Positions 4,823-59,281 of a stretch of DNA of 64,000 nt are shown piece by piece (position 1 is the first letter of the stretch; each line of letters opens with the position of its first letter). A program made the position numbers and the translations under genes. The DNA comes from Octopus sinensis (taxonomy: Eukaryota), in the NCBI RefSeq assembly GCF_006345805.1, contig NC_043004.1, positions 82,708,001 to 82,772,000 of the forward strand, in the 5' to 3' direction. The notes under the pieces are model-generated. The model was not told the DNA's origin, did not search any database, and saw nothing but the letters and a program-made list of their open reading frames with translations.

Positions 4823-5776
4823 ATGCAACTCAAAGAAACACGATTCTTTAAAATGATAGAACTGTACCAGAAACTTAATCATATCAGGTTATTATTTACG
4901 AGTATCGCATCTCTGAAATCGCTGAAATATAGCGCAATTTGTTTTTATGCGTTTTATGCAGTGTATTGTCTATATTCGATTGGAAAACCCGCTCTAGATC
5001 TTGTTATTTTAATACAACTGAGAGATAGGACACCTGATGAAATATTTGTGTATATTTATTTCATATTTTCTCATTGTTTCCTCACACTGCATTGTGTTAT
5101 AAAATCCTTCAAAAAATTTAATGCTGAGGAACTAATAGAAGCTTTTGACAAAATTAAAGTTCAAGAAGAAGATAAACAATTCTACAATTCAGCATCAATA
5201 TATTCATATAAGTTATTAGGTGTTGTTATATTCTTGAGAATTATAATTTATTTTATCATCATTCATTTAATTTCGTATTTCAATGACAATTTTGTTAGTT
5301 GGTTAACATATCCTGTTTCAGTTAGCAATCCGTATAAATGGCCGATGTTAACAATTCAGGTTTTATGTAATTGCATATCAATTTCATCGTTTACACTTGA
5401 TTTCTATATGAACTTTGCAATTGAAACTGCATTGTCCTATGAATTCAACAAAGTAGCGAAAGAAGCTCAGAGATACATCGAAGAAAAGCAATCAGACGCT
5501 TCGTATTTCTTTAAGAAATACAATGAGATTACAGAAATATTTAACACACATGATACTCTGATTACAACAGTGAAATTAGTAAATGAATCGTTTCACAAGA
5601 CGGGCGGACTAATCGTAATTAGTAGTATTTTTGGATGTTGCATTGCAACTTACGGAATTATAAATGGTTCCTTTACAAATATATCATATATATACTTCTA
5701 TGTTTCATATCAGTTAACTAATTGCCTTACTCATTTTATTACAACGGTTTGGATAGGAGTACGTTTAAACAAATCG
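4823..5776 (+). CDS. GR-like (GRL) 7TM chemoreceptor, large coding exon (TM1-TM6), copy 2, intact
   Basis: 318 codons from ATG (MQLKETRFFKM) to WIGVRLNKS, then phase-0 GTAAGT. Six hydrophobic segments; HDTLxxxVxLVNESF and CCIATYG motifs. Confidence 0.8.
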
Positions 5777-6049
5777 GTAAGTTATATAATATATTTATAT
5801 AGTTCTATCAACTGCTTATCCGTGATTCTATATTACATGTGACATCATGAAAGACAAGGAATTAATAGACTCATTGAAGAGTCTACACAAATTTTTGTGT
5901 CCTTTTCTTGGTTTTCTATGATTAGGAATCTTATTCCACAAATAAGAATCGTACCAGTTATCTTTCCAGGTTTTGGTAATAAAATTTGGTGACTACAGTA
6001 TATATTTCGCTGTTTTCCACTCGCTCTGTCTCTATCTTACTGAGACTGG

Positions 6050-6560
6050 GGTTTCTTCTTCTTCTTCTTCTTCTTCTTCTTCTTCTTCTTCATCATCATC
6101 ATTTGTTTTCTTCTTCTTCTTGTTCCTCTCTTCCTCTTTTCATTCTTCTTTTCTTCTCCAATTTCCTCTTATGCATATTCTTCTTCTCCTCCTCCTCCTC
6201 CTCCTGCTCCTCCCCATTCTCCTTCTTCTGATGATAATAATAATAATAATAATAATAATAATAATAATAATAATAATAATGATAATAATATTAATAATAA
6301 TAATAATAATAATAATAATAATAAAAACAATAATAATAATAATAATAATAATAATAGTAATAATAATGATAATAATATTAATAATAATAATAATAATAAT
6401 AATAATAATAATAAATAATAATAATAATAGTAATAATAAAAACAATAATAATAATAATAATGAAAACAATAATAATAATAATAATAATAAAAACAATAAT
6501 AATAATAATAATAAATATTATTATTATTATTATTATTATTATTATTATTATTATTATTAT
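6050..6560. repeat. Compound microsatellite (TTC)n/(CTC)n/(AAT)n/(TTA)n
   Basis: Read directly from the sequence. Confidence 0.95.
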
Positions 6561-7150
6561 TTTGCTTTGTCTCAGGTTCGGTCATATTCCTGGTAGTGAT
6601 TATTTGGATAGTGGGTTACTATCGCTAAACATGTGTATCCATAAGTTTTCCCCATCTTCCGCCTCCTGATAATCCTTGCTCTACGTAAGGGTCAGACGTT
6701 TTGTAAGAGCTCTACTGAGCATTTTATCTCAATCTCCCTGAGGCATTTGTCTATATCCTCACTTGCTGATCCCTGTGTAGTAATTATCCTAAGCCCGACC
6801 ATTACTGTTCACATGCTCCAATTTCTTCCTATTACACATTTTAAAGGATTGTATTCTTTTATCGTTTTCCCCCTCTTTCTTTACGATTCTGGAGTCAAAT
6901 GGGCATGATGGGTCGATAAATAAGCAGCTTCGCTTTCCCCTATCTATGATTGCAATGTCAGGTCTATTGGTTATTGTTTTCTCATTTCTTGTCCATTTGA
7001 ATGGGAAAATTACACAAAAGCTTACATTTCTTCGACTCTAATACTCTTTTGACTGGATGATTGTACCACGTGTTTCCAGCTTGAGTTCCCTATTTCTGGC
7101 AAAGTTTCCTGTATAAGACTTTTACACTCTTGTCGTGTCTCCATTTCTTA
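6560..7150 (-). mobile_element. R4/Dong-type (RLE) LINE 3' fragment
   Basis: Minus strand reads NRPDIAIIDRGKRSCLFIDPSCPFDSRIVKKE (restriction-like endonuclease), followed by a (TAA)n tail. Confidence 0.7.
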
Positions 7151-7166
7151 AATTATTATCATAATT

Positions 7167-7372
7167 GGCTGCTAGCAGAATAGTTAGCGTGCTGTACGGA
7201 GTAATTAGCAGTATTTCGCCCATCGCTACGTTCTGAGTTCAAATTCCACCGAGGTAGATTTTGCCTCTGATCCTTTCGTGATAAAAGGCAAATTAAGTAC
7301 CAATCAAGTCTGGGGTCGATGTGATCGACTATCCCACTCGGCACAAATTTCAGGCCTTGTGCCTATAGTGGA
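7167..7372 (+). mobile_element. tRNA-derived SINE family A (degenerate)
   Basis: B-box-like GAGTTCAAATTCC; GTAGATTTTGCCT..ATCCTTTCG; GGGGTCGAT body shared with other copies. Confidence 0.75.
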
Positions 7373-56639: not shown

Positions 56640-56900
56640 AAATTAATAATTATCGCCATACTAATGTGGCAGTCTTATGAATATAAGACTAAAGCTGTCG
56701 CTGATTAGCTCCAAGAGGCCACCGCCTCTAGCTAGCTATTTGACACACAACCTGCGTCCATTACAAACCTTCGAACAGGGGAGGGCAGCCGCTTCATCCC
56801 GCTAGTCAGACAGCTGCAGACATGTTTCAGGGTTGTTGCCCTTTATCAATGCAGCGTAGTCAGACCCGCAGGTGTCGCTACCGACCGTCTCTGTTCGAAG
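56640..56900 (-). mobile_element. Penelope-like relic, paralog of 37580-37860, with decayed hammerhead (56814-56854)
   Basis: Minus strand: CTGCA-TTGATAA-AGGG..CCCT-GAAACATGTC-TGCAG. Confidence 0.5.
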
Positions 56901-57245
56901 ATTTTATTTACCTATATATATATATATATATATATATATATATCCTCAGGTGATACTCAGTTGGCGTCTAAGTAAGCAAGTTTAGATTGCCATCGCCTGA
57001 GGAGATACATATAGATCTTCTTATACAAGTAAATCGTTAAATAATTTAATTGAAACGTAAACTTAACTTTAAATCCTGTATATACAAGGATCTATATGTA
57101 TCGAAAACTTTCTAGCGATTGAAAAGCTGCCTAACCGTACTTAGTGTTGCTTTCGACTCCTCATTTTTACTTTATAGTAAGTATGAATGCATATATATAT
57201 ATATAATATATATATATATATATATATATATATATATATATATAT

Positions 57246-57665
57246 GCGCAGGAGTGGCTGCGTGGTAAGTAGCTTGCTTACCAACCACCTGGTTCTGGGT
57301 TCAGTCCCACTGCGTGGCAGATTGGGCATGTAACCTCTACTATAGCCTCGGACAGACCAAAGCCTTGTGAGTGGATTTAGTAGACGGAAACTGAAGGAAG
57401 CCGTCATATATATGTATATGTATGTATATATATATATATATATGTGTGTCTGTATGTGTTTGTTTGTGTGCCTCAGTCCCCCCCAACATCGCTTGACGAC
57501 CGATGCTGGTGTGTTTACGTCCCCGTAAAAGAGACTGATAGAATAAGTACTAGGCTTACAAAGAATAAGTCCTTGGGTCGATTTGCTCCACTAAAGGTGG
57601 TACTCCAGCATGGCCGCTGTTAAATGACTGAAACAGGTAAAAGAGTAAAGAGTAAAGAGTAAGAG
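57246..57665 (+). mobile_element. SINE family B, near full length
   Basis: GCGCAGGAGTGGCTGCGTGG head, B box and tail. Confidence 0.85.
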
Positions 57666-58345
57666 AATATATATATATATATATATATACATACATGCAT
57701 GTAAGTATGTGTGTAAGTGTGTGTATGTGTATACGCACACATTCATTTTAATTATTTGTGTATGTATTCAACAGTAGTCACAATATACATTAATGAATAT
57801 TGCTTCATTATTGGAAAGAGTTAGAAACTAACTTTCCCTGAACAAACATTTACAAGATCACATTATTTTTCAATTTGGTAATATATATATATATATATAT
57901 ATATATATATATATATATATATATATATATATATATATATATATATATATAATGGAAGTAAATAAATTCTGTATTTGCTATATTTATTTAGTTTTCCCTA
58001 TTGTGACAAGCATATATTAGAAAGTAATATTTGTTAAACGGTAACATCTTCAGGCCTCTGAATAAACGTAAATTTTAGTAAACCGGAAAGATTCTATTGA
58101 AAATTCATCAGAGGTTTGTACCAGGACCATTTGGATGAATTGAAAGGAATTTAATCAATATACTAATTGATTCATATTTCGATATTTATATTATTTCTGC
58201 ACGAGTGTAAGCAATCTAGTAGTTCGATAGCCTGCGCAGTAAGAAGTAAACGGCACGTGAGCTAGGTGTATTATACCAGAACTTAAAACGAAGAAGGCGG
58301 ATTGTGAAAAACAAAACCCAAAAAATCAAGGATCCAAAAGAAAGA

Positions 58346-59281
58346 ATGTTCCTAAAACTACTGGAATTTCATGGAAAAATGCATGATTTGAAAAGAAAAG
58401 CTACGAAAATCTCACACCTGAAATCAGTTGAATTTAAAACAATATGTTTGCAAATTTTATGCAGATTGCTTTGTATATATTTGGTTATAAACCCCATTCT
58501 ACAAATTTATGGTTTAATTCAACTGGACTCTATTACAGGAGATAAAGCATTTGCGTATATTTATATAATATGGTTTCGAAGTACCATATCTCTCCATATT
58601 ATCTTGAAACTGCTCATCCCAGGGAAAAACACTCATCTAATTGAATTATTCAGAGAAATTAAACTAGACGACGGCGAGGAAGAGTTTTATAACAGTAATG
58701 TTATATTTTCATTTATGACACTATCAATATTCAGTATTCTCTTAACTATTTGGAATATAATTATTGAGGCCATTTTACCAATTTTGAGTACGGATTTGCT
58801 GAATTTCGCTACATATGCTCTACCTATGAAGAATATACATCAAATAAAGGTTTTCATAATACAGGTTGTATTAAACATCATCGCACTTGAATTCTCTATA
58901 TTTGATGTTTACATAAACTTTATAATCGCATTTGCACTTACTTATGAGTTTAATAAATTGGCGAAAAGGGTTCAAAGATATGTAAAGGAAAAGCAAGCAG
59001 ACAATCAGTTTTTCTTCAACGTCGACAGAGATATTACAGAAATATGTAACGCGCACGACACGCTTAATACAATGCTGGGATTACTAAATCAGTCAATATG
59101 GTGTGAATCTGGATGTATTGCACTTAGTTCTATTATTAACTGCTGTATCTCAACTTACGGCATTATAAACGATTCATTCAAAAATAACACCTATATATTC
59201 ATTTATATAACACTACTGACTTGCGCTGGCTTCTTAAATTTGATGTTCATGTTTTGGCTTGGAATTCGTTTAAATAAATCG
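58346..59281 (+). CDS. GR-like chemoreceptor exon copy 9 (most divergent), intact frame
   Basis: 312 codons from the first ATG (frame open from 58250). YEFNKLAK, DITEICNAHDTL, CCISTYGIIN, WLGIRLNKS|GTAAGT. Confidence 0.75.

Follow-up and report, generated by a model that had tools for sequence, protein, structure and literature searches.

A 64,000-nucleotide stretch of the Octopus sinensis genome (the window, to which coordinates refer unless another locus is named) very probably contains the greater part of an array of variable exons belonging to one gene, LOC118764608. The products of this gene are read here as having the seven-transmembrane ion-channel (7TMIC) fold of gustatory receptors (GRs), and as being assembled from alternative first exons and one shared set of exons for the seventh transmembrane segment (TM7). 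Each large exon supplies its own ATG, a predicted cytoplasmic N-terminus, TM1 to TM6, and a phase-0 splice donor. An initial annotation of this DNA had described a family of six-helix receptor proteins of about 315–320 residues. Six hydrophobic segments per unit are indeed seen by hydropathy, but the units are alternative 5′ exons of LOC118764608 that lack TM7, and three of the nine are degenerate. The same annotation had suggested a cephalopod-like genome, which is correct. The window matches O. sinensis CM016866.1, and its overlap with L002, the locus fetched for the LOC118764608 product P0034, covers 33,230 nt with 0 mismatches.

Large variable exons

An open reading frame (ORF) listing, together with tblastn searches using one copy, located nine paralogous units, every one of them on the plus strand. 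Six are intact, with 312–319 codons each, and three are degenerate. Pairwise identity in an alignment of the six intact units ranges from 37% to 63%. The limits of the family given in the initial annotation, 4823 and 59281, coincide exactly with the point where the first intact unit starts and the end of the last exon.

Conservation of the units stops at the sequence ...G[IV]RLN.S, immediately followed by the hexamer GTAAGT, which forms a phase-0 splice donor. Because this donor lies directly behind each unit, the apparent C-terminal tails (VSYIIYLY... and similar) are intron read-through. The reading frames extend past the donor merely since the intron sequence stays open for a few codons.

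The first intact unit, V2 (4823–5776), has 318 codons running from the ATG through TM1–TM6 to GVRLNKS, with its phase-0 donor GTAAGT at 5777. V3 (10149–11096) has 316 codons, a GTAAGT donor at 11097, and 61% identity to V2. The same donor follows V5 (32227–33183, 319 codons) at 33184, V7 (40771–41724, 318 codons) at 41725, V8 (47168–48124, 319 codons) at 48125, and V9 (58346–59281) at 59282. The V9 frame opens at a GTG at 58304, and its 312 codons are counted from the first ATG, at 58346. The intron that begins behind V9 occupies the rest of the window (59282–64000, plus strand) and runs out of it, with a further large exon and all constant exons lying beyond.

The degenerate units differ in their damage. 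V1 (3066–3662) is without its first ~118 codons and contains one in-frame stop; it keeps the tail GVRLNKS and a GTAAGT at 3663. V4 (18225–19174) carries one frameshift near 19110–19125, and its tail WTGVRLNNS and the GTAAGT at 19175 are kept in the shifted frame. This unit is either a pseudo-exon or the product of an assembly error. V6 (36879 to ~37256) is a frameshifted fragment of approximately codons 1–128 that runs into a (TA)n microsatellite. A further GIRLNNS at ~29888–29908 was considered as a candidate tenth unit and rejected as a chance match, as its surroundings have no homology to the family.

Shared exons for the seventh transmembrane segment

The remaining parts of the gene were found in L002; their window-equivalent positions continue the window numbering past its end. 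An additional large exon, V10 (L002 42321–43271, window-equivalent 73091–74041), is intact and has the donor GTGAGT. It is followed by three small constant exons: C1 (L002 46673–46741, window-equivalent 77443–77511; 23 codons), C2 (L002 47649–47738, window-equivalent 78419–78508; 30 codons), and C3 (L002 49533–49589, window-equivalent 80303–80359; 18 codons, with the stop codon included in the coordinates). These exons lie 13.4–16.4 kb beyond the window end and encode the TM6–TM7 loop and TM7 (GSFITYILVVIQ), with the motif TYILVVIQ. A polypyrimidine tract and an AG acceptor precede each of them. The three introns at the 3′ end thus separate the large exon from C1, C1 from C2, and C2 from C3, the last one falling six codons ahead of the TY of TM7. 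Phase 0 was assigned to all three by counting codons by hand in the printed sequences. Only one C1–C2–C3 set is present in L002 (46673–49589). The array as a whole extends over at least 77 kb (window-equivalent 3066–80359), with long interspersed nuclear element (LINE) insertions between exons, and its upstream end lies outside the window.

Annotated isoforms of LOC118764608 connect the large exons to this set. Isoform X1 (P0034, 389 aa) is identical to V7, residue for residue, over positions 1–318, and then continues with VHSITQSIHYMQFQGVDQEVVAK / ILVFLNRLTTESHGIDVGGCFVITPSSTLT / MIGSFITYILVVIQTKPL. The last 70 codons of V8 form the start of isoform X2 (P0038), and the last 70 codons of V9 form the start of X3 (P0016). 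All three isoforms end in one identical 71-residue C-terminus. The joins are those of RefSeq computational models.

Searches for a TM7 or constant-exon copy within the 64-kb window found none, whether by tblastn with C-terminal peptides from both species, O. bimaculoides and O. sinensis, by blastn-short with the DNA of the constant exons, or by motif scan. Likewise, a private TM7 exon behind each unit was not detected, as these searches and an all-against-all blastn of the inter-exon DNA returned only chance 10–11-mers and shared repeats. As a positive control, the constant-exon queries recovered their targets in L002 with E values of 1e-8 to 3e-17.

C1 carries two acceptors 42 nt apart, of which the internal one reads ...TTTCAG|G. 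Use of the inner acceptor (after ...ATGCAGTTTCAG) drops the 14 residues VHSITQSIHYMQFQ from the TM6–TM7 loop. The shorter isoforms P0001 and P0035, in which the first 14 constant residues are missing, are accounted for in this way. Both forms are present in the O. bimaculoides annotation, as X1 (390 aa) and X2 (376 aa). Among the O. sinensis models, X2 and X4 of the sister gene LOC118764607 take the inner acceptor, and the outer one serves X3 of that gene and every LOC118764608 model.

Fold, topology, and family membership

Hydropathy analysis of the full-length isoform resolves seven peaks, of which the large exon accounts for six and C2/C3 for the last. Together, the N-terminus and the TM2–3, TM4–5, and TM6–7 loops contain 24 lysine and arginine residues, versus 2 in the TM1–2, TM3–4, and TM5–6 loops and the C-terminus. 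By the positive-inside rule, the predicted topology is N-terminus inside and C-terminus outside, the inverse of that of G-protein-coupled receptors (GPCRs). N-x-S/T sequons fall in the predicted outer loops. The intracellular N-terminus expected in the initial annotation therefore agrees with the computed topology.

AlphaFold2 models were obtained for P0001, an O. bimaculoides relative (predicted local distance difference test score, pLDDT, 77; predicted template-modelling score, pTM, 0.73), and for the window-derived P0034 (pLDDT 71, pTM 0.70). In both, a short helix at the N-terminus precedes seven long ones, and helices 4–6 reach well past the membrane span into the cytoplasm. When these models were compared with the PDB using Foldseek, the first 15 matches for P0001 and the first 20 for P0034 were all insect odorant receptors (ORs), Orco, or GRs. 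For P0034, the top 20 had probabilities of 0.99–1.00 (1.00 in 19 of 20) and TM-scores of 0.41–0.61. For P0001, the top 15 had probabilities of 0.90–1.00 (1.00 in 10 of 15), including two weaker matches with probabilities of 0.90–0.98 and TM-scores of 0.34–0.40. The receptors matched include AgamOR28, AaegOR10, Orco, MhOR5, ApisOR5-Orco, Gr64a, Gr43a, and BmGr9 (for example, PDB 6c70, 7lic, 8v3d, 8ze0, 8x84, and 8vc2), at sequence identities of 9–14%. Matches to proteins other than these receptors did not exceed a probability of 0.51 or a TM-score of 0.26. The GR-like 7TM ion-channel fold proposed at the outset is thus upheld by the structural comparison.

Comparison with the Pfam family 7tm_7 (PF08395), for which the curated cut-off is 26.6 bits, was suggested in the initial annotation and gave a divided result. 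The cut-off is passed by P0031 of O. bimaculoides, which is 53% identical to P0034 (31.6 bits, profile positions 33–367 of 370), and by P0037 from the O. sinensis sister locus (30.3 bits). Within the window, V5 is the only exon that matches the profile by itself, at 17.5 bits (E 0.0028), which is below the cut-off.

The consensus of TM7 in GRs is TYhhhhhQF. C3 encodes GSFITYILVVIQTKPL, in which the T, the Y, five hydrophobic residues, and the Q are kept and a T stands in place of the terminal F, giving three of the four TYhhhhhQF positions. A TM7 motif is the established hallmark and defining feature of animal gustatory-receptor-like proteins (GRLs) (PMC7746228). Here it is encoded by a constant exon beyond the reach of the initial annotation, which had proposed H-x2-L-x6-N-x2-F, a Tyr in TM5, and an Asn after TM6 as putative hallmarks. 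Introns near the 3′ end are characteristic of GR and GRL genes (PMC7746228, PMC5850775). Assignment of the family as GR-like is supported by its modelled fold, topology, TM7 motif, and family-level Pfam matches; at the sequence level, the evidence bearing directly on the isoforms of the window itself is weak.

Conservation and selection

Across the six window copies and one O. bimaculoides relative, the invariant columns are F208, N209, and K210; I236, I239, H243, D244, L246, and N254; C273, T276, Y277, G278, I280, and N281; and G312, L315, N316, and S318. These columns bear out the motifs of the initial annotation, which had also recognised the repeated homologous units. Its observation of greater variability in TM1–TM3 and the loop before TM4 holds equally well: relative to the TM4–TM6 part, the first two thirds of the units are the more variable, with a mean pairwise identity of 0.27–0.53 over residues 1–200 versus 0.47–0.66 over residues 201–280.

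Pairwise ratios of nonsynonymous to synonymous divergence (dN/dS, Nei–Gojobori) among the intact exons are 0.41–0.64. By region, they are 0.41–0.71 in the N-terminal two thirds and 0.37–0.54 in the C-terminal third. As judged from these pairwise ratios, the pattern indicates relaxed purifying selection. Positive selection is not demonstrated, nor is the diversification that had been envisaged, with all regions below 1.

Relatives and replicate loci

Searching with a window exon brought up a single homologue in the databases, isoform X2 of O. bimaculoides LOC106880719 (P0001, 376 aa), which is 40% identical. It is collinear with the window exons as far as ...LNRS, and then carries 57 extra residues ending in GSFITYILVVIQTKSL, which constitute a TM7 with the GR-type T-Y-h5-Q motif. 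An exhaustive comparison of the family profile with 1.84 billion cluster representatives returned just 18 matches at E≤0.001. Two of the 18, and others from a further search, are O. sinensis RefSeq proteins, and every named match is an ‘uncharacterized protein’ of Octopus.

The O. sinensis sister gene, LOC118764607, provides a gap-free replicate of the locus (L004; CM016866.1 83,161,909–83,253,231, reversed). It is encoded on the opposite strand at a distance of ~390 kb from the window, which makes it and the window gene convergent. The fetched part contains seven large exons, six of them intact, each followed by GTAAGT, GTGAGT, or GTAAGC, and then a single C1–C2–C3 set. At least eight large exons exist in all, and one longer isoform starts farther upstream. 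Comparison of the constant parts of both O. sinensis loci shows identity at 65 of 71 positions (six differences, counted by hand), and the variable exons are 37–63% identical. Two inverted exon fragments are also present in the sister locus (L004 38153–37778 and 49665–49183).

In O. bimaculoides, LOC106880719 has five large exons before the constant exons, with a 49-kb span for the 390-aa product, in an assembly that is full of gaps. The corresponding sequence (CM046608.1, L001) contains 23,650 N. Inside its last intron, a few kilobases from the forward set, there is an inverted second set of all three constant exons (the copies are at L001 50545–52809, minus strand, and 56117–59271, plus strand). 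No inverted copy occurs within 10 kb of the O. sinensis constant exons. The O. bimaculoides arrangement could be that of two interlocked loci, or could be an assembly artefact.

Several transcript models in both species have unusual starts or joins. X2 (P0038) and X3 (P0016) of LOC118764608 are partial models that both begin at a homologous internal methionine, at approximately codon 249 of V8 and V9. In O. bimaculoides, X3 (P0020) links a fragment of one large exon, read out of frame, to a position within the following large exon, and then continues into the constant exons; the sites tied to this cryptic splicing are L001 10903–10956 and 17542–17604. The starts and joins of P0038, P0016, and P0020 suggest that there are read-through transcripts in which cryptic acceptors within large exons are used.

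Two much more distant relatives were found in L003 (Logan SRR11869385). These proteins, P0017 and P0019, are 16–22% identical to the family and match its profile with E values of 2e-9 and 7e-5. They end in ...G[IV].(Y/L)(N/H)..VS, resembling the same donor position read through, and could represent further GRL loci from the same or another cephalopod.

A model of exon choice

The arrangement of the locus suggests how one gene might generate many receptors. A promoter ahead of one large exon would start transcription, and the donor of the chosen exon would be spliced to the first downstream acceptor, that of C1. Any intervening large exons would leave as part of the intron, the course described for Drosophila Gr39a. 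Going by their homology to the GRs and ORs of insects, the isoforms would each form a tetrameric ligand-gated cation channel in which TM7, common to all isoforms, would line the pore as it does in the insect relatives. The conserved cytoplasmic ends of TM4–TM6 (YEFNK..., HDTL..., and CC.ATYG.IN) would serve as an anchor, and the divergent outer halves of TM1–TM4 would provide a different ligand pocket in each isoform. In this way, one locus could yield about seven receptor variants.

The DNA before each ATG is purine-rich, with no conserved polypyrimidine–AG, and the large exons are probably first exons that each have their own promoter. A sequence element at 4582–4677 (plus strand), ~150–240 nt before the ATG of V2, has the core ACTAATTGATATCAGTATAATATTGATTTT and holds a TATA-like run. 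It is shared by V2 and V3 (9882–9981, 81% over 100 nt), and shorter pieces occur at V4 (~17997–18053) and V5 (~32013–32048). V6, V7, and V8 have a different upstream block in common. Such blocks may be exon-specific promoters, or a mere trace of recent duplication.

A bolder extension of this model is that octopuses diversify an insect-type 7TMIC receptor in the manner of the clustered protocadherins of vertebrates. Two loci would then offer ~17 or more promoter-selected first exons, each sensory cell choosing one and splicing it to a common TM7. This is offered as a speculation that is unlikely to hold in full.

Weighing the evidence

A number of observations weigh against reading the locus as a single GR-like gene with alternative first exons. 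TM7 is modelled at low confidence (pLDDT 31–50), because few sequences cover this segment, and its motif ends in QT instead of QF. The 7tm_7 profile gives no match to the window-derived full-length isoform P0034. Profile searches of the PDB using the family alignment, with and without TM7, found no OR, GR, or Orco chain at E≤10, so the tie to solved structures rests on the fold comparison. The RefSeq models cover just three of the six intact window exons (V7, V8, and V9) and are computational, second-hand transcript evidence. Finally, two of these models are partial and begin at an internal methionine, and the O. bimaculoides X3 joins part of one large exon to a site inside the next. Some read-through or cryptic splicing therefore takes place, and the choice of exon may depend on more than the promoter.

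The alternative that survives best accepts the proposed architecture and assigns it another GR or GRL role, such as sensing light, peroxide, or temperature, or developmental patterning, in place of external chemoreception. Non-arthropod GRLs of known role are not taste receptors. LITE-1 and GUR-3 of Caenorhabditis elegans sense light or peroxide, and Drosophila Gr28b(D) senses temperature. A role in developmental patterning has been cited for a cnidarian GRL, Nematostella Grl1 (PMC5850775). Moreover, chemotactile sensing by octopus suckers is already ascribed to receptors like the nicotinic acetylcholine receptor (nAChR) (PMC12635824), and recent reviews ascribe octopus contact chemosensation to nAChR-like receptors only. 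On the other side, two loci hold ~17 or more diversified exons that diverge most in the helices forming the ligand pocket of insect receptors. This is the pattern of tuning to many ligands, albeit circumstantial. A non-chemosensory role is consequently considered a serious possibility, although not the likelier one.

It is also conceivable that the array is mostly a decaying relic, in which only the exons at 40771, 47168, and 58346 are used and the upstream units are unexpressed pseudo-exons. Three of the nine units are visibly broken, the upstream exons are without any RefSeq model, and the dN/dS of the youngest exon pairs (0.54–0.64) implies fairly relaxed constraint. The units at 4823, 10149, and 32227 nevertheless keep frames of 316–319 codons, the ATG, all invariant motif residues, and the GTAAGT donor, and dN/dS stays below 1 even at dS of ~0.35–1.1. 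Additionally, chemoreceptor isoforms of few cells are commonly missed by bulk RNA sequencing, which counts against reading the missing models as disuse. Decay on this scale is accordingly regarded as quite improbable.

A tandem family of separate, complete GRL genes would account for the ATG and long ORF in each unit and for the 5–14 kb spacing of the units, which is as expected of tandem genes. Each gene would then encode a six-helix protein of ~318 residues or possess a private TM7 exon. This reading conflicts with the GT donor at the same codon in the units and with the absence of any TM7-like exon between units, both in the window and in the gap-free LOC118764607 locus. It also conflicts with the full-length relatives, which have 375–390 residues and seven helices, and with the three RefSeq isoforms whose different large exons precede one C-terminus that is encoded once in the genome. 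For the exons at 40771, 47168, and 58346, separate genes are refuted by that shared C-terminus, and for the array as a whole they are very hard to credit.

That the products are seven-helix GPCRs or transporters is the least credible proposal of all and is refuted as far as computation allows: although seven hydrophobic helices alone do not separate these classes from 7TMIC channels, Foldseek matches to GPCRs (probability ≤0.15, TM-score ≤0.18) and ATP-binding cassette (ABC) transporters (≤0.35 and ≤0.26) score far below those to OR, GR, and Orco structures, the charge distribution places the N-terminus inside, and the Pfam match is to 7tm_7 and not to any GPCR family.

Transposons and repeats around the exons

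A LINE-like remnant occupies 933–3076 (plus strand), with an ORF1-like frame at 933–1727 and the start of an ORF2 that contains an Exo_endo_phos_2 domain (E 1.5e-13). It is 3′-truncated, has no reverse transcriptase, and ends exactly at the start of the 5′-truncated V1. A single deletion or rearrangement therefore probably removed both the 3′ part of the LINE and the 5′ part of the exon. A near full-length LINE lies between V4 and V5 (21728–26495, minus strand). It encodes an ORF1 with a CCHC zinc knuckle (25614–26495), an endonuclease (23582–25036), and a reverse transcriptase with zf-RVT (21728–23542), and its GC content is 0.55, versus ~0.29–0.42 in the rest of the window.

Extended stretches of microsatellite and low-complexity sequence, consisting of (TA)n and trinucleotide repeats, occur between and beside the exons, at 5973–6596, at ~37260, and upstream of 18225 and 58346. 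The (TA)n run at ~37260 terminates the degenerate V6, and the 207-codon ‘ORF’ at 5973–6596 is made of repeats only.

Significance

Both components of this system are already known: the GR/GRL receptor family, recorded in molluscs since 2015, and the locus design, described in Drosophila between 2000 and 2008. What appears to be new is their combination in a cephalopod, with ~2–5 times the fly number of exons. Public annotation gives the products no name beyond ‘uncharacterized protein’ and includes three out of about seven usable exons. Surveys of gene families in cephalopod genomes will overlook these receptors or get their number wrong if they do not count the large exons as belonging to isoforms of a single gene, and the six-helix ORFs need the constant exons added before any modelling or expression work.

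By analogy with the insect channels, the locus would represent a second candidate family of ionotropic sensory receptors in octopus. It also amounts to a natural experiment in dividing a 7TMIC into components common to all variants (the TM7 pore helix and conserved anchor) and exchangeable ones (the helices of the ligand pocket). If the protocadherin-like reading is true, octopus would possess, in addition to the chemotactile receptors derived from nAChRs, another ionotropic repertoire for chemosensation that has gone unrecognised until now. If the layout with three small exons is homologous to that of fly Gr39a and Gr28b, this mode of receptor diversification would date to the protostome ancestor.

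Comparison with known systems

The closest parallel in locus design is found in Drosophila. Gr39a has large exons that each encode six TM domains, after which come three small exons for TM7, and the splicing model is as described for that gene; Gr28b and Gr23a are further alternatively spliced Gr genes (PMC2204066). LOC118764608 shares with these three loci the tandem large 5′ exons that have their own start codon, six TM segments, and a 5′ donor. As in the Gr39a type, three small constitutive exons supply TM7 and the C-terminus, the first acceptor occurs only at the small-exon block, and exons within the array have undergone duplication, divergence, and decay. The fly loci, in contrast, have 2–5 large exons, compared with about 10 in LOC118764608 and at least eight in LOC118764607. 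The octopus genes further differ in belonging to a cephalopod mollusc, in extending over an array of at least 77 kb with LINEs between exons, and in the internal C1 acceptor that governs 14 residues.

GRLs have been recorded in Mollusca, for Aplysia (PMC7746228, PMC5850775). No description of cephalopod GRLs, their gene structure, or alternatively spliced molluscan GRLs was found in the literature searched, which is weak evidence as subscription journals were mostly uncovered. The octopus family resembles non-arthropod GRLs (Pfam 7tm_7) in its seven TM segments, predicted intracellular N-terminus, TM7 motif T-Y-h5-Q, and, in general position, introns near the 3′ end. It is unlike other GRLs in being isolated in sequence, as the 18 profile matches among 1.84 billion representatives attest.

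The insect Orco, OR, and GR tetramers are the sole confident structural matches, with which the octopus models share the short N-terminal helix, the seven TM segments, and the long helices 4–6. Unlike those receptors, the octopus proteins have a poorly modelled TM7, identities of only 9–14%, and no sequence-profile match to them, and their tetrameric state, pore, and gating are postulated from the insect channels.

Beyond chemoreceptors, the nearest counterparts are the clustered protocadherins and UGT1A. Their proteins are unrelated to those described here, and promoter choice for each exon, which is established in those systems, is suggested in octopus by the conserved upstream element. What the octopus locus has in common with both is its basic plan, that is, tandem variable first exons spliced to one downstream constant set.

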